Shown here piece by piece: positions 3,739-49,660 of a DNA stretch of 64,000 nt (the stretch's first letter is position 1; each line of letters starts with the position of its first letter). The translations under genes were made by a program, and so were the position numbers. The DNA comes from Utricularia gibba (taxonomy: Eukaryota; Plantae; Magnoliophyta), in assembly GCA_002189035.1 (NCBI GenBank), contig NEEC01000009.1, positions 2,480,001 through 2,544,000 of the forward strand, in the 5' to 3' direction. A model generated the notes under the pieces. It was given only the letters and a program-made list of their open reading frames with translations, had not been told where the DNA came from and ran no database searches.

Positions 3739-5559
3739 TCTTAGATTTTGAAGTCTACTAAATTATTGGTGCGTGTGCGTATGTATATCTATGTATACCA
3801 TGTGCGTTGTTGTGGGGTGGAATAAATTCCATTTTATGATGGGCCCCGATTTTGGATGCGGAGTGGGCCATTGACCGCCCTGGCTGATTTGGATGGAGAT
3901 CACGCCTGGACCACCCGCAACGTGGAAAGGACCATTTCACATGACATCCCACAAATAAATTACCTTACTTTTCATGTTTTCAAATTAGATTCAATCATTT
4001 TTATTAAATGTTAAAAATATATATATGTTATTTTAAAATTTAAATGATTGATTTTATTTTTTACAGTATTTTTAAGACTGATTTTGTGATGCCAAAACTC
4101 CTCCACCTCCATCAACTCAAATGACATTTTCTGAACCATTTAATCCTTTTCAATTTTATGTAACTGGGAAGTAAGAATTCAAGAGCAATAGTGCATTTGG
4201 TGCTGCAATAGTTCAAGCAAGGGACAAGGGCATCCATATCATCATCATACGCGCATCACTCATGACATAATGCAATGAAACAGTCATTCATACAGGCTGA
4301 CGGTAAGAAGTAAGAGTCACAGGTTTTCCCCAAGAAGAGTTGAAGGGTTCAACTAAGATAAGACAGCATGCTGATAAAATGAAAAGGACCGAGCAATCCA
4401 AACATTCGACCAAGAGAGCAGCACATACCAGCACACGTCATATTTCGTGTCCTATCCCACAGAAGCTTCGTAGAACCGTGTTTACTTTGAAAAAACCAGG
4501 GTCCTTCACTTGAGGAATGTAAGCTAATATTGGAAGATAGTGTTTGAATCACCACGACATGGGTGTCCATCTTTCCTCGAAATTGCCATCAAACAGAGCA
4601 GCAGGAAAATCATTCAAGACCCCAACAGAATTTCGTTGGGGTGATGTTAATTAGGGTCGTTACCAATTGCACTATACATCATTTTTCGCCAGTCTCGCGT
4701 CTCGCTCTGTAAAAGAGCATTGCTGTTTCAAAATGAGAAGAAACAGATGATCATTTTCGATAAATGGGCAAGCAAGTGCAATAAAAGCTAGAAAAAGTAC
4801 TCCTTCCAACAATGCTTTCAATCACCAAAAAACCGGATAACTTCAATTGATGGGCACGGAAACGTAAAAAAGCAAGCACATGCCAAAATACGGTACTCAT
4901 ATTAACGCTCTCAAGTACCTCAACTGATGACCCGGAAATCTGGAAAAAGAATCTCAACAGAAAACCAGAAGATGGAGATAATTCCTCACCTGTGAACGTC
5001 GCCGGAGATGACTGCCCATGTGCTCATAGGTAACGAAGGTAAACAATCTGGAGATAGAATCGAATCCAGGAAAGGACGACCTCGCTGGAGATGAAATTCG
5101 TCAGGGTAAAAGTAAGCAACCCATTAGTTTCAGCCACGGTCAGAATCAGATGCTCGCAGTCGCTTTCATCAATCAATTACTCAAAAATATAATATTTTTC
5201 CTAAAGGCGATTTAACGAAGATTTTCAAAATATAATTTAATATTACTGCTGATAAATAGCAACAAATCAACCACGCTTTTTGGAGGCCTAAAGCTCGTAG
5301 CCTGGCTCATTAGTCAACAAAGGACTGCTGCATTTATGATCAAACAACACATCTCATTACAAACCAAAGAAGACAAAGAAGAGCTTCCACCGACGGTGAA
5401 TCAATAATACATGAGCAGTGAAGATCAAGAGATCACACCACAGTTTCAAATCCAGGAATAGCAACGACAACAAACAGCCTTCACTTCACATTCGTCACAC
5501 AGCAACATCGCACGGAAGAAGTTGTTAAAAGCACACACAGATTTGTTCCTTCCCATTTT

Positions 5560-41437: not shown

Positions 41438-43440
41438 ATGTCTTCCACTGTGAGAAATGCATTGTTAGAGAAATATGGAGGTGTGAGGCTATGGGTTCTC
41501 CTCTGCTTGGGCGTTGTTGCATTCATACTCCTCATCCTTGCCATCTTGTCGATATGGATCATGTCTCGACGGAGAAACCGGAAAACACTGGATACATCGT
41601 TTTGCCGAACCCCGAGAGTTTCGAAAGAGATCCGAGTGGATAGAGTTGGAGATGAGAGCAGAAACAATGGAATAGAGACTGTGCGCATGAACACCAATGA
41701 CAAGCCAACTAAAAAAAACTCAGACAACTTGCTAGTTCATTTTGCTAGGAGTAGATCAAGTGATGTTGATGATATTAGCCAGTGCAGTTCATCATTTCGT
41801 CGTGAAAGGGCCTACAGCTCTCAGTCCGGTGAGGAAGGCAGCTCTGGGAATGTTCGAAAGCAATCTATGAACCTGCTGGGGGTTGCCATGCCATCTCCTT
41901 TAGTTGGTTTGCCGGAGATGTCTCATCTCGGATGGGGACACTGGTTCACTCTCAGAGACCTTGAAATCGCAACGAATCGATTCTCAGCAGATCATGTCAT
42001 CGGTGAAGGTGGTTATGGTATTGTTTATCGTGGAAGACTGGTTAATGGCACAGAGGTTGCTGTTAAGAAGCTTCTCAACAATCTGTGAGAGAACTATCCA
42101 TTTGCCTTGTGACATTAAACTTGATGACATCTTCATCTGAATGAATTTTTACTGCAGAGGTCAAGCAGAGAAGGAATTCAGAGGTGAAGTAGAAGCCATT
42201 GGCCATGTTCGACACAAGAACCTCGTACGCCTTCATGGCTACTGCATCGAGGGAGTTCATAGGTTACCATCTACCTCTTGAAACTGCAGAAAATATTGCT
42301 AAAAGTGAATGAAAACTCATCTGATATCCGAAATGGTGCTCAGGTTGCTTGTGTACGAATATGTGAACAATGGTAATCTTGAGCAATGGCTTCACAGCGT
42401 TCCGAGGAACAATGGCTCACTTTCATGGGAAGCCCGCATCAAAATTCTTCTTGGCACTGCAAAGGCGTGAGTGCATATCAGCTCATCTTCGAGGTTTGAA
42501 CTGAAAGAACACATGCTGCATCATCATCCCTTTCTCATTTCTTTTGCAGGCTTGCATACTTGCATGAAGCCATAGAGCCTAAAGTTGTGCATCGCGATAT
42601 CAAATCGAGTAACATCTTGATCGACCAAGACTTCAATGCGAAAGTTTCTGACTTTGGTTTGGCTAAGCTTTTAGGCTCCCATCAGAGTCACATAACAACA
42701 AGAGTAATGGGTACTTTTGGGTATGCATTCTTGTCTTTGCAATACAATCACCATATTGCTGCAGTTCTGTACTCGCTCATTTGCTTCCTTTTCTTTGTCA
42801 AGTTACGTGGCTCCTGAATACGCCAACTCAGGCTTGTTGAACGAAAAGAGCGATGTATACAGCTTCGGTGTCCTACTGCTAGAAGCCATTACTGGAAGGG
42901 ACCCTGTTGACTATGGACGCCCTGCAAATGAGGTGGGCTCGCCTCTGACGTGCATCATGATACAGAGCCTGGTTCAATAATCTAGAGATAGCTGTTTAAT
43001 GTTTTGATCATCTATCTCACCAGGTTAATCTGGTCGAGTGGCTGAAAATGATGGTGGCGAACCGGAGAACAGAAGAAGTAATGGACCCGAACATCGATCC
43101 GCGCCCCTCGACACGAGCCCTGAAGCGGGCGCTTTTGGTGGCACTCAAGTGTGTTGATCCTGATTCAGAGAAACGACCCAAAATGAGTCAGGTTGTTCGA
43201 ATGCTCGAAACTGACGAATTCCCATATCGCGAGGTTTGCTAGCCTTCCTTCTGTTTATTGATCACTATCCCTGACATAGAACATAGAGCTAGTATAACTC
43301 ATTCTCCCTGCTCGCAACTCCAGAGCCGCCGGAGTCGGAAAAGCCGGAGCATGGATGCCGGTCCGGTGGAGAGGGAGGAGCATTCACACGGCCAGGCTTA
43401 TGATCCAACTGACAGAAATGGAGATGCAGGAGAAGGTTGA
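41438..43440 (+). CDS. Receptor-like protein kinase, RLCK-V group (At2g42960/At3g59110-like), multi-exon
   Basis: N-terminal TM segment, then [58 protein letters not shown] and [11 protein letters not shown]. Confidence 0.93.
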
Positions 43441-45404
43441 CGGCCCCCAGTTTTCTGCTATGTGGAGTTACATTTACAGAAAAAAAAAGTATATGAAATG
43501 AAACAAATTAATCCATTTGTGTAGTTCTCTTCATGTACAGTACCTGCTGTTGATTCTTCCATTTTCCTGGTTTCGGTTTCCATTTATTTAATGAATTTGA
43601 TACTTAATAATAAATCATAGGAGTAAAATCTGGAATCAAAATCCTCCGAACTGCCGCCAGACCGCGATTCGAAGTTGAAGAAAGAGAGGGGAAGTTCCTG
43701 GGGCAGGGGCTCGCGGGTGGTGATTAAAGAAAGATGGGTATGGAGAAGCCCGTGCATCTTTTTTTCTGCCAGGAGGCAGAGAAATTGGGCTCGCAGCGTT
43801 GCTGCTCACTCGTAACTCGTTCAAATTCAATCCGTTAACTGGAGGTGAAGCCATCCTTCCCCATTACTGAGATTGACGAAATAATCTTGTGGGAACGTTT
43901 TTCATAACCATTGATTGTTGAAGTTTCTTGCTTTGTGAGAATTGCAGTTTCATATTCCTGTGGGTTTTTAAGGTGTTCACTCGATGAGGCTAGTTCTTGG
44001 ATGGTTTTTGAGAGAGAGATGGCTTTTTTTTCATGGGTTCTAGGTGCAATTTCATTGATGATTTTACTAGGATTTCATTGTCAACTGGATATGAAATGAT
44101 GCTGTGGGTTTATGCAAGAGTTTTGATGAAGCGTTTCCGAATCCTTTCATCAATAATGCACAAGACATTCGGGGCCATCATATTGCCTTCTGAGCTTCTT
44201 TCATCTCAACTACTGTTATATTTGAACAGCTTTCCGTCATATATGCACTGCCAATGCTCTTTTCTGCCTCATTTCCATTAGCGTTACCCTTCTTTCCGAC
44301 TGGTTCTTTCGAAGGGATCGAGGAGGAGCGTGATGTTGCCACAGACTTTACCATGGCTAGGATGTTCTCCTGCATTCCTATTTCTAGAGGTGATAGAGTG
44401 TAAGCCTGCTGACAATCGTGGTTGATGGTTAATTTTTGCCACCCCGACTGCTGATCTTTCATTGTTTTCAGAAGATTCTGTGAAGGCATTTTACCCGTTC
44501 CTGGATCGTTGATTCTTGCCCCAGATCAGTTAGGGCCATTAGGGGGAAGTCTCCTTTCCAAATGTTGAGCTTGGCAGGTTCAATAGCTGATGCCCTGCAG
44601 ATTTGATCCACAGAACTCTCATGGAGGAGCTGTATACTTCCCATATGTGTCTTTAGCCAATGATCTGTTTTTCAACCAGGAATTTGTTCCTAGTTTATTT
44701 ACTACTGTCACTGGTTTTGATCTTAAAATTCTGGAGGCTGGTGAAGCAATTTATGAGCTTCTGACAACATAGACAAGTGCATTATCAAACTTTGCAAATT
44801 TGCAGGAATTTCCATGCTTGAGAAAGAACATTAGTGCCATTGTGCAAATCTACAGTTGTTGTATGATCAATCCATTCTTACCAGTAAATAATGCTGGAGT
44901 TTTCTAGGAATTAGCAAATTTGCAGGCAACTTTTTCTTCAATCCAAATTGCCCATCTCATGAACAGTGGATTGAAGAGATGAAAGGGGAGAATTTACAGC
45001 TAAAAGCTGCGTAAAGATTATACCTTTAAGTGAATGCGGAAGAATGTAGTCTGTAAATTGGTCCCAGGCCTGAACTGGAAAGCGAATTAACAATGAACCC
45101 AAAAACATTGTTGCTTGTGTTATGACAGACAATTAAAACCGCTAGCTGCGGTGCTACAGCAGCAGGGGGCCTAGCGCCTGCGTCTACTTATAAATGACAA
45201 AGCTTTTCACTGCAGTGAAAACAGTTTTTGACGCCTCATGGGATGAAGAAGAAGATAGACAACACATTTTGATTTGACCTTACGGATTTCCTCCCCATTG
45301 TCACCATCTCGAGATTCGTGCAGCAAACAACAGCGGCCCATTAGAGAAGGGAAGGGAACTCTGTTCTTCAACTGTTTTTGTGGCTGTGGTTCAATTCGAA
45401 TAAT

Positions 45405-46100
45405 ATGTATATAAAGCTTCGCTGTCTTCAGGACTCAGAGTCCCCAGTCCCCACTGCGATTTTGAACTTATTTCCTCTATCCGTTCCTTTTGCCTTCTGC
45501 TATTGCAGATTTACATTTTTCTTTGAGTTTTCGAAACCCGCCGTTTCAACAGCACTTCGACTTCGCGCTTTCTCCCTTTCTTCATCCTCCATGGCATCGT
45601 ACCCTCTTCAAGCTTGTTGCAGATGGGCTTCCCTCCCGAAAGGTGAGATTTTTCTGAATACCCATGTTTGTTATGCGGGTGTTTTTTGAGAAATGAGTTT
45701 GGATTTTCGACAGGTGATTTCTTTTTCGCATTTCTCGTGCACCCTGTTGGAACTATTTCTGTTTCTTGGTCTTCCTGTGAACGAACACTGCTCCGCCTCT
45801 TCCCAAGGCCTTTTTTTTCCGCTTATCGTTTGTGTCTTCACACGTTTCAGGCGCGGAAGAAGCTGGAAAACTTGGCTCCGGTCGCTGAGCACATTTAAAT
45901 GAATGGGCTCTTCAGTTGAGGTTTAGTTTGACGAATACACTGTTGGGGGAATGAAGCTTTTGGTCCGGAGTGAATATCAAACTTGTTGGGTGGTGATGCT
46001 TTTTACATTCTCATCATATGAAACTTATGCTGCTATCAGTCTTCTGATAGTTTTTTGGGTTTCCCTAGAGCTTCATTGCTTCTTGGAATAGGGAATCCAC
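45405..46100 (+). ncRNA. Candidate spliced lncRNA/small-ORF transcript carrying a miR165/166-complementary site
   Basis: TATA-like TATATAAA near 45407, CT-rich leader, AG|GTGAGA donor at 45643 and TTTCAG acceptor at 45850. The only spliced ORF is 29 aa. The miR166-complementary site is at 45946-45968. Transcript ends are estimates. Confidence 0.4.
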
Positions 46101-46983
46101 AAAGAAATTGATAGTTGATTCCTTGTTCTTTGCTGAAATAGGAGAATCCAGTGTTGGTTGCAACCCACACGTAGTCTCTGCAACTTTTCTGGCAGAGAGT
46201 ACAGAGAGATTCACCCATAAAAGGCACCCATCTTCTCTTTTAACATAAACATGTATCCAATCCAATCAAGAAATGCAGAACCGAAGTTTCTTGTTGCAAT
46301 TCATCTGGTATTCCTCGTGGGAATCTGTGCAATAGTTCTAGATCATGGAAGCCTGCTGCATCCGTCAATCAAGTCCTCCCCTGAGAATCCAATCCCTGCG
46401 CCGTCTCTGAAAGAATCCCAGCTGCATTGTCCCGGAACACCAGCGTTCCCAATCGCCCGCTGGTTGTCGTCCACCAAAATCGTCGGAAAAATTTGAAGAA
46501 ATTGATTGAATCTGGGTGCCTATTACAATGATAGGGAGTCGCGAGAACGACCCGGAACACGAAAACGCGGAAATTCGCACCGGATAATGAGAATTCAGAG
46601 AGGCTAGGGTTGAATCCTCCGGCACCCGTAGCCATGGGAGCCGCCAAGGAAGCTTCTCCGTTAGGCGGGCCTCTTCCATTTTAGGCCCATGTTCATGGAT
46701 CATTAGGCCCAATATAAATCCATCTACTTCAGTAAGTAAATAAATAAATTTAAAATTAAATAAATAATTCCATATCGTTTGCCAAATAATCTACCCTACG
46801 GTCAAAGTCAAGATATCAAGTGGGTAGATTCCTGAAAATCATTCTGGTTACAGTGCATCATCGTGGCCGCATCTCAGCCTGAAGACACATTTACCGCCTC
46901 AACTTGACGGTAAAAATCCCTTTTTTTCTACATATTTAGTTGTACTGTGCATGTGCAGGAAGAGATCTCAACGCTGGGCGACA

Positions 46984-47205
46984 ATGAGCAAGTACCGTTT
47001 CACGGCGGCGGCGATGGAGACGTCGAGAGACGAGTTGGGTTTCCGGCGGTGGAGTGCTTATCTGAGGTGCTTGCGGAATCTGCAACTGTTGCCCAAAGCG
47101 GCTCCGGCGGTTGCACCCGGCAGCTCCCGGGACGCCGTGATCGAGAACAGCTACGACAGAGTCATGGAATTGAGCTGCTGGGGACCCTCCACCGTCAGAT
47201 TCTGA
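46984..47205 (+). CDS. Wound-induced protein (DUF3774), copy 1, divergent N-terminus, 73 aa
   Basis: RDELGFRRW plus C-terminal VMELSCWGPSTVRF*. Confidence 0.8.
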   Translation: MSKYRFTAAAMETSRDELGFRRWSAYLRCLRNLQLLPKAAPAVAPGSSRDAVIENSYDRVMELSCWGPSTVRF

Positions 47206-48357
47206 GAGAATCTATCTCATCTATCTGGTGTCTGCGCCTGCGGTGTGTATGTAAAAGAACCCCTGATGACGAAAGCCCTTTGTTTACCAGTAAAGCTTGC
47301 ACCTGTCTAGACGCAGCGTGCTTCTCTGAAGTGAAGAGTGTCTCTACTGTGGAGTGTCTGTAACTTTACTGTGCAGAAGTAGTCCAATGTCAAGCTTGTT
47401 GTATATGGGGTGTGTATTATGGCTTGGTCTTCATATATACGAACGATGATCAGTTTTAAGATTAATTTTTTTGTATTGGGAACTGTTGATTAACCTCGAA
47501 CATGCAACAAGTTGCTCTTGAGATTGTTAGAATGGATGCATTGAACTTAAGAATGAGATGCATTATATGAACACATATGAAACATAAGTAAATAATAAAC
47601 GTAAATCATATTAAAAAATATTAGAATCAATACATTACTAATGATTTATAATATATTATAGACTCGATTATTTAACTTTCAAGTCCTGATGTATGATCTT
47701 TTATTTTGATAGTTTATAGTATTTAGTTGGCGATTATGATAAAAAAACACATAAAAAAACCTAAGATACTCAACATGTTACTAGAATTGAACAAAGTAAC
47801 ATAGAAAAATGATCTCAAACAAGATCGTATTACAAAATGCAATGTTACAGACACAAACTGTATAAATCTAAAGTTTCATCCGGAAGACCACTTCAGAACT
47901 CATCTATATTCAAGGGGCTCTCTCGAATGCTCCTCAAATCACAAACAGTCCTCTTTTAAATAAATGAATGGCCATAAATTTTAAAAATAAATTCATTAGT
48001 GAATATGATTTGAATATAGTAGTGATGATATATTAGCACATTTAACCAAATCATTTTAAAATGAATAATTTTAATATTATATTATTATAACCATATAAAA
48101 GCCAGTCAGATTCCCGAGTAAATCTGGTCTGTATTCGTTTTTAATTTTTCCTTGTTGTCTTTGCGTGTATTTATTTAATAATATTAATAGAAATTAAAAG
48201 TTATGGGGTCCACCATCCGGAAAAAAAGCCCCATGTTTTCCCGGAAACCACGAGTGTGGGGAAAACCAGTGTGCGGTGGACGTTCCTATATAACAAGAGC
48301 TCAACCTCCCCCATACCAAAGCAATCGCAATCGCAAGAGCAAGAGCAATCGGAGAAG

Positions 48358-48633
48358 ATGAGTTCGGCGAAAAAAGTGTCTTCGCTGGTGGCGGGAGCCA
48401 GCGTTCTGGCGGTGGAGGCGTTGAAGGAGCTGGGCTTCTGCAGGTGGAACTACACGCTGAGGGTTCTGCAACAGCACGCCAAGAACAATCTCAGGTCCTA
48501 CACGACGCAGGCGCACAAGATCTCGGCTTCCACCTCCGCCGTCGTTTCCAACAAGAAGAACAACGACAAGTTGAAGAAATCGGAGGAATCCCTGCGACAA
48601 GTCATGTATTTGAGCTGCTGGGGTCCCAATTGA
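48358..48633 (+). CDS. Wound-induced protein (DUF3774), copy 2, 91 aa
   Basis: AVEALKELGFCRWNY...KSEESLRQVMYLSCWGPN*, with a TATA at about 48288. Confidence 0.93.
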   Translation: MSSAKKVSSLVAGASVLAVEALKELGFCRWNYTLRVLQQHAKNNLRSYTTQAHKISASTSAVVSNKKNNDKLKKSEESLRQVMYLSCWGPN

Positions 48634-48655
48634 TGGATGGATGGATGGATGGATG
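48632..48655 (+). repeat. (GATG)6 microsatellite starting in the stop codon of WIP copy 2
   Basis: Read directly from the sequence. Confidence 0.9.
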
Positions 48656-49660
48656 ATCATCCAGCCTCCTTCTCCCCCCTTTTTCCCCCCTCTGTATAAA
48701 ATTCTGCTTCAAGAGAAATGAAGCCGCATAGTGTTCTCATCAAATTTCGTCCCCAATGTTTTTCCAAGCCCTAATTTCTTCCCGATCCAGAGTCCAGACA
48801 GACGCGTCGAATCGAAATCTCCCAAAACTTATCCATTCCCGAGACGAGAAGAATACGGATCCCCAATTTCATTTTTTATTATTTGAAAATTAGATAGATT
48901 CGGGTTAACCCGCAAAAGCCCCCGTTAACCCGGTCCTAGGATAATACGAATCGAGACGAATTAAAAAGTAGATTATTAACGATAAATGAATATCTAGAAG
49001 GGAATGGAGTGGAAACACAATTATCTGAAATTATTTTTGTAAAAGAAATTAAAATATCCTTGGAGCGGAAGGGTATTGTTGTACTTTCAGGCATATCTAG
49101 AAGGGAATATTCCGAACTTGGTGGGGGGTTTTTGTTTTGATTAGGTTAACCCGGCCGCCACGTTCGACCCGGGACCGCATCTTGAAAATTCAACCCGACA
49201 AATGATGTGTATACTCTATGTCCTAAACATCCTTTAAACTGCCATTTGGAAAATAGAGTTCCTGATTTTTTGATATTTTTTATTAATTAAAAACATTTAA
49301 ATAATATTTTTGATTAAAATAAAATGGAAAACGCATTTTTGAAGATATGAAAATGAAAATAGAAATATCGTGGAAAGTAATAATGTGTGGGGCCCAGTTC
49401 ACATCCAAGCACAGCCACTCGTTGAATGGAAGATTCTTCGGGAACAATCCATTTCCATGGTCGCCAACTCCGCTTCGCTTGGTTGCAACAAAAAACCAGT
49501 AGCTGGATTGAGATCCGCCCCCGGGATTCACCGCCCCCAGTTACCCTTTACCGGGTGAATTTCTGGATGTATATATATGGAGATTACCCCATTCCTCATC
49601 AACGGAAGGAAAGAAGAAGCGACGGGAAGAATCTGAGTTCTCATTTGCCTGCGGGAAAGA

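Follow-up and report, generated by a model that had tools for sequence, protein, structure and literature searches.

We identified a candidate natural decoy for miR166 in the 64-kb stretch of Utricularia gibba DNA that was analysed (the window). The candidate site is the 23-mer GGGGAATGAAGCTTTTGGTCCGG at 45946-45968 (+ strand), and we put at roughly 0.5, about even odds, the probability that it is the miR166-binding element of an eTM166-type decoy (eTM, target mimic) located in a short non-coding + strand transcript. The decoy reading draws on the sequence of the site, its uniqueness, its predicted duplex with miR166, the lack of coding or hairpin signatures around it, and its likeness to conserved natural mimics. 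The carrier would be a short non-coding or short-ORF RNA from the + strand, starting near 45440 behind a TATA-like box and ending near 46200. AGO1-miR166 would dock on this RNA via perfect seed pairing (nt 2-8) plus 12 contiguous pairs (nt 10-21), slicing would be impeded by the 2-nt U bulge next to the catalytic centre, and miR166 would be retained on the RNA, relieving class III HD-ZIP mRNAs of repression. On this reading the locus would be transcribed from the + strand, and the transcript would keep the site in its mature form, resist slicing there, and affect HD-ZIP III genes.

The predicted pairing extends over the whole of miR166. In the best register found by RNAduplex, all 21 miR166 bases are paired, with 19 Watson-Crick pairs, two G:U pairs, and a 2-nt U bulge in the target. 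The 3′ arm of miR166 (nt 21-10) forms 12 contiguous Watson-Crick pairs with 45946-45957, C45957 being opposite G10; the central U run (45958-45961) provides one G:U pair with nt 9 plus the 2-nt bulge; the seed complement TGGTCCG (45961-45967) pairs perfectly with nt 8-2; and the last base (45968) forms a G:U pair with nt 1. The bulge lies between miRNA nt 8 and 9 in this register, and the U run lets it move among 8/9, 9/10, and 10/11. Wobbles fall at nt 1 and 9 in the best register and at nt 1, 9, and 10 in the 10/11 register, with zero mismatches. The departures from a perfect miR166 complement are confined to the centre and nt 1, positions at which a mimic tolerates them. The first-pass annotation of this DNA had counted 18 Watson-Crick pairs, and had described a 2-nt bulge at the slicing site, in which the four target bases CTTT face only G10 and G9. 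Its two perfect arms (nt 11-21 and 2-8), the G:U pair at nt 1, and the size of the bulge all hold; but the count rises to 19 with the C45957:G10 pair, CTTT does not face the two guanines unpaired (C45957 can pair with G10, and one U wobbles with G9), and 10/11 is just one of several near-equivalent registers predicted by RNAduplex for the bulge. The predicted energy of the miR166:site duplex is -36.9 kcal/mol, compared with -44.9 for a perfect target and -38.4 for an STTM-like design; the duplex with miR165 is slightly weaker (-35.5).

The standard eTM rule of Wu et al. (2013; Plant Physiol 161:1875), as quoted in PMC4274897, requires perfect pairing at nt 2-8, a bulge of 3 nt at nt 9-12, and no more than three mismatches or wobbles. 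The site pairs perfectly at nt 2-8 (TGGTCCG, 45961-45967), has two or three G:U pairs outside the bulge depending on the register (where up to three mismatches or G:U pairs are allowed), and lies in intergenic, non-coding sequence more than 200 nt from genes; its bulge, however, is 2 nt long, where the rule demands exactly 3 nt at nt 9-12. A bulge of 2 nt falls within the effective range of 1-5 nt (best 1-4), a range measured for bulges at nt 10/11 only: Ivashuta et al. (2011) found decoys with 1-4 nt bulges the most effective in planta, and the bulges that they tested were all between nt 10 and 11 (PMC3121747). The earlier proposal of a natural miR166 decoy is partly supported, at the level of sequence (seed, 3′ pairing, small central bulge, and a layout like that of natural sites), but not under the strict 3-nt-bulge rule.

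The 23-mer occurs once in the 64-kb window, exactly where the first-pass annotation had placed it, and a gapped search of the window for both miR166-complementary halves returned 45946-45968 as the sole place. No match to GGGGAATGAAGCTTTTGGTCCGG appeared in 100 shuffles, even at three mismatches, and a search of the window for a second copy of the site region found none (it is not a repeat). We estimated a chance expectation of about 0.009 sites per 100 Mb on both strands (18 fixed bases, 7 spacer lengths, and the composition of the window), so chance does not account for the site at the scale of a genome. The same kind of pattern gave about 100 matches, mostly high-GC bacterial and arising by chance, in a far larger metagenome collection, so the rarity statistic is valid for a small genome only. 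Among these metagenome contigs, none carried the same site as the window.

Upstream of the site, the stop codon of a receptor-like kinase gene is about 2.7 kb away; downstream, the ATG of the first of three DUF3774 genes (a wound-induced protein family) follows after 1.0 kb, so that the nearest genes are more than 900 nt distant. Identity between the DUF3774 protein and Lamiales proteins is 65-75%. The copy closest to the site (46984-47202, + strand) is very divergent: its 27.6 bits barely pass the Pfam threshold of 27.3 bits, it has no 5-residue words in common with any protein in a large collection, and it may be decaying within the tandem array. The copy after it (48358-48630) reaches 101.9 bits in Pfam. 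On the other side, 1.6 kb separate the kinase from the candidate unit, and the minus strand there (43600-45200) contains several ORFs of 58-103 aa with no Pfam match; they could mark a gene that has escaped annotation, or a second non-coding unit that uses a shared divergent promoter region at about 45200-45400.

Several sequence signals around the site would fit a putative short + strand non-coding unit. A TATA-like box (TATATAAAG, 45408-45417, + strand) followed by a pyrimidine patch is a candidate core promoter, from which transcription would start near 45440. TATA-like matches in 45000-46720 are found on the + strand only (at 45189, 45408, and 46713), and there is none on the minus strand from the site to 47433. 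The match at 46713 probably serves the DUF3774 gene, which makes it less likely that the site belongs to an intron in the 5′UTR of that gene. In the whole window, the TATAWAW motif occurs 124 times, compared with 41 expected from shuffles; this excess probably reflects the AT-rich promoter and intergenic tracts of a gene-dense genome. Downstream of the candidate promoter, a possible first exon contains a short ORF (45591-45642, + strand) with an ATG in good context and 17 codons, running into a strong donor (AAG/GTGAGA) at 45643. A possible intron (within 45643-45850, + strand) would extend from this donor to an acceptor at 45713/45714 (71 nt, U-rich) or at 45850/45851. Either splice yields a short ORF (78 or 29 codons) that ends at or before 45898, that is, 47 nt upstream of the site, so the site would be in the untranslated 3′ part of the transcript if splicing, which the first-pass annotation assumed and GT/AG signals suggest, proceeds as predicted. 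The product of exon 2 (45716-45895) has no Pfam match and no relatives among 1.84 billion representative proteins (a collection without the proteins of this organism), and the ORFs of 43600-46712 together gave no Pfam matches.

The site is also located in a domain with a strong excess of T over A on the + strand (45300-46200). The AT skew over 45440-46200 is -0.30, among the lowest 1.3% of 760-nt windows, which is a weak hint of a U-rich sense strand; skew is a weak indicator of strand here because the known genes of the window show no consistent skew. The excess stops abruptly near 46200. Nine RNA-like runs from three studies contain 13-36% of the sampled words of 43000-48900, a signal that applies to the interval as a whole and is not localisable inside it. 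A published catalogue of U. gibba lncRNAs gives its positions as unitig coordinates (PMC8333044).

Sites of a similar layout are conserved next to a protein gene in other eudicots. Seven low-GC legume metagenome contigs (L028, L035, L041, L066, L084, L091, and L095) carry GGGGAATGAAGCAGATTTGGTCCGA 225 nt past the stop codon of a 233-aa single-exon gene (in L035, the site is at 5413-5436). The encoded protein matches one from Phaseolus at 91% identity, and related proteins occur across eudicots. The host gene encodes a transmembrane protein of about 220-235 aa in a single exon and belongs to no Pfam family. At orthologous loci in rosids and asterids, the corresponding site is found 144-273 nt after the stop codon: GAGGAATGAAGCTCTCTCGGTCCGA in Buddleja (L109:4936-4959), GAGGGATGAAGCATTATGGTCCGA in Olea (L110/L111:4810-4832), and GATGAATGAAGCCTTTTGGTCCGA in Brassica rapa (L112:4869-4891 and L113:2486-2508). 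A search within 1 kb in Nelumbo (L114) gave no such site. Conservation is seen in the pairing arms, whereas the insert and flanks vary (identity is 0.75-0.83 in the site vs. about 0.6 in the flanks), and a miR166 mimic under selection would be expected to leave such a footprint; the conserved sites may represent the published eTM166 family as a 3′UTR element.

The window site and the conserved sites share one layout, (G)GAATGAAGC, a variable insert of 3-7 nt, and (T)GGTCCG; every conserved site retains the C that faces G10 and has its insert after this C, as in the window. The natural Brassica rapa site GAATGAAGCCTTTTGGTCCGA has GAAGC, a T-rich insert, and TGGTCCG in common with the window site, and differs from it in one C and the last base. 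The conserved sites end in A (a Watson-Crick pair with nt 1), whereas the window site ends in G. The predicted duplex of the window site is the strongest of the set (-36.9 kcal/mol, followed by -35.8 for legume, -33.8 for Brassica, -29.5 for Buddleja, and -28.7 for Olea). The conserved sites adjoin a protein gene, whereas the window has no homologue of that protein by tblastn; there is also no similarity between the flanks. We therefore rejected orthology with the transmembrane-gene site and regard the window site as a separate locus.

The main rival to the decoy reading is that the site is a functionless relic with a miR166-related ancestor: an old MIR166 gene, seen in antisense, a piece of a processed HD-ZIP III mRNA, or another mimic locus that was duplicated. 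Its + strand would be silent or too weakly expressed to titrate an abundant miRNA. Look-ups of the exact products of five local ORFs, which found no assembled transcript, are in keeping with a relic, and so are five Lamiales DUF3774-cluster loci from Handroanthus and three Sesamum species, which have no miR166-like site within 10 kb (their neighbours differ from those of the window, and synteny is not established). The site also has an inverted-repeat partner at 46064-46077. Some features of the site recall its possible sources: the final G, which wobbles with nt 1, and GTTGGG in the 5′ flank, which we take to resemble HD-ZIP III target sites, and the CCCCCAA of the minus strand, which presumably resembles the flanks of MIR166 precursors; all of these carry little information. 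The site is complementary to the AAUG form of miR166; HD-ZIP III target sites carry the GGGAUG form. A fragment of an HD-ZIP III gene or pseudogene was considered and rejected: there are stops in all three frames around the site, no Pfam match, and no remnant of a START domain or homeodomain in the flanks. The first-pass annotation likewise placed the site outside any HD-ZIP III gene, and no ORF piece near the site matches Pfam.

A decayed MIR166 on the minus strand, the alternative offered at first pass, was discarded as well. Scans of 3 kb and 401 nt for Rfam mir-166 on both strands gave no match at E<=10, Rfam over 1-46700 gave nothing at the gathering score, and miR166 itself is absent from the window at up to three mismatches. 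The minus strand does not fold into a hairpin, and its fold leaves the candidate arms unpaired. The pattern of changes also speaks against a relic. Under neutral decay, changes would be expected anywhere among the 21 positions, but both arms (11 + 7 nt) are intact, and we estimate a chance of about 1% that three random events would all fall at the centre and nt 1. Moreover, compact genomes, of which this is one, tend to shed useless intergenic DNA. On balance, we consider a relic possible but doubtful, and the decoy the better account of the site.

A second rival takes the site as a true miR166 target, cleaved at some rate by AGO1, through which miR166 would control the level of the transcript or of its short ORF. 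The best register pairs G10:C and C11:G and has the 2-nt bulge at nt 8/9, so miR166 may slice the site to some extent, as judged from the modelled duplex; the bulges of Ivashuta et al. were tested solely between nt 10 and 11 (PMC3121747), and the possible short ORF ends only 47 nt upstream of the site. However, the conserved Brassica-type natural site also pairs nt 9-11 with a bulge at 8/9, eTM166 RNAs act as decoys in Arabidopsis and tomato, and the short ORF of the window has no relatives. In general, as with IPS1 and miR399, a bulge adjoining the scissile position blocks slicing. A cleavable target is thus improbable, clearly more so than a relic.

Less probable still is a functional minus strand, that is, a diverged MIR166-like gene or another source of small RNAs yielding the miR166 look-alike CCGGACCAAAAGCUUCAUUCCCC. 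The feature in its favour is an inverted repeat of 8 bp, with extensions, 100 nt away from the site. On the + strand, this repeat appears in the predicted fold as a pairing partner downstream of the site (46064-46082, 8 exact bp plus extensions that depend on G:U pairs); but on the minus strand three G:U pairs turn into C-A mismatches, and the arms are unpaired. Six other chance pairs in the same 600 nt are at least as good as the inverted repeat, neither strand matches Rfam mir-166, a 2-nt insertion sits in the centre of the would-be mature sequence, and the minus strand has no TATA-like box from the site to 47433. Nor did we retain the hairpin of 45945-46082 as a meaningful structure of the + strand: the z-score of the + strand fold is only -1.9, the inverted repeat is chance-like, and opening the site costs 7-10 kcal/mol, which is average for this RNA, where the median over other 23-nt stretches is 10.7. 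By these folding models, the pairing of the site with 46064-46082 is probably incidental. The loop between the site and this partner contains a small near-perfect hairpin (CUAUCAG ucuu CUGAUAG, 46032-46050, + strand). Lastly, a pure chance match is hardly credible: split 18-base patterns do arise in very large data sets, as in the approximately 100 mostly bacterial metagenome matches, but about 0.01 are expected per 100-Mb genome.

We return to the decoy and what it would mean. In its favour, miR166 ranks with the most abundant miRNA families of U. gibba (PMC8333044). miR165/166 and class III HD-ZIP genes set adaxial-abaxial polarity, and trap formation in bladderworts has been connected with how far the PHV domain extends. 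If the locus is a natural miR166 decoy, it would offer a simple handle for tuning the miR166/HD-ZIP III axis, and several decoys kept in a genome shorn of most non-coding DNA would argue for selection on such lncRNAs. A bolder idea, which we regard as improbable, is that miR166 decoy RNAs form a small family of independent loci retained in this very compact genome, the present one being an unusually tight binder with a minimal 2-nt sliding bulge, and that together they would fix how wide the HD-ZIP III (PHV) domain is, and with it the choice between leaf and trap development. The locus would be only mildly unusual, in its 2-nt sliding bulge and in the number of such loci in a very compact genome. 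It is a candidate, at the level of sequence, in an established class, and would probably add one more member to the natural miR166 mimics.

Among known systems, the MIR166 precursor (Rfam mir-166) shares with the minus strand of the window a miR166-like 23-mer; unlike the precursor, the window has no hairpin, no miR166* arm, and no covariance-model match, and has a 2-nt insertion in the would-be mature sequence. Target mimicry itself was reportedly founded by Franco-Zorrilla et al. in 2007 on IPS1/At4 and miR399, in which a centrally bulged, uncleavable site in a non-coding RNA sequesters the miRNA. IPS1 differs from the window site in its miRNA and pathway and in its bulge, which is 3 nt long and exactly between nt 10/11, compared with 2 nt in the window; furthermore, the IPS1 site is part of a 23-nt motif that is conserved across species, in an RNA inducible by phosphate starvation. 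Artificial decoys of miR166 (MIM166 and STTM165/166) are said to have been made by Todesco et al. in 2010 and Yan et al. in 2012. They address the same miRNA as the window site with a similar predicted energy (-38.4 kcal/mol for the STTM-like design vs. -36.9 for the window), but they insert 3 nt at nt 10/11 and pair both G9 and G10 by Watson-Crick pairs, whereas in the window G9 is in a wobble and the bulge is 2 nt.

The closest known counterparts are the natural miR166 mimics, among which csi-eTM166 is also counted. As the first-pass annotation had stated, natural eTMs are already described as a class: ath-eTM166-1, osa-eTM166-2, and slylnc0195 have been published and functionally tested. 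According to PMC8005961 and PMC8215657, which cite Wu et al. (2013), over-expression of ath-eTM166-1 and osa-eTM166-2 alters leaf development; base editing of the miR166 site of At-eTM166-1 leads to lower PHV, CNA, and PHB mRNA (PMC8989527); and slylnc0195 of tomato is a miR166 sponge (PMC4683531). Natural eTM166s under the rule of Wu et al. have a 3-nt bulge, compared with 2 nt in the window, and they show no similarity to the window locus beyond the site. What the natural miR166 mimics have in common with the window site is an intergenic non-coding setting, a perfect seed, a near-perfect complement, and a small central bulge; the expected outcome for them, as for the candidate decoy in the window, is de-repression of class III HD-ZIP genes.
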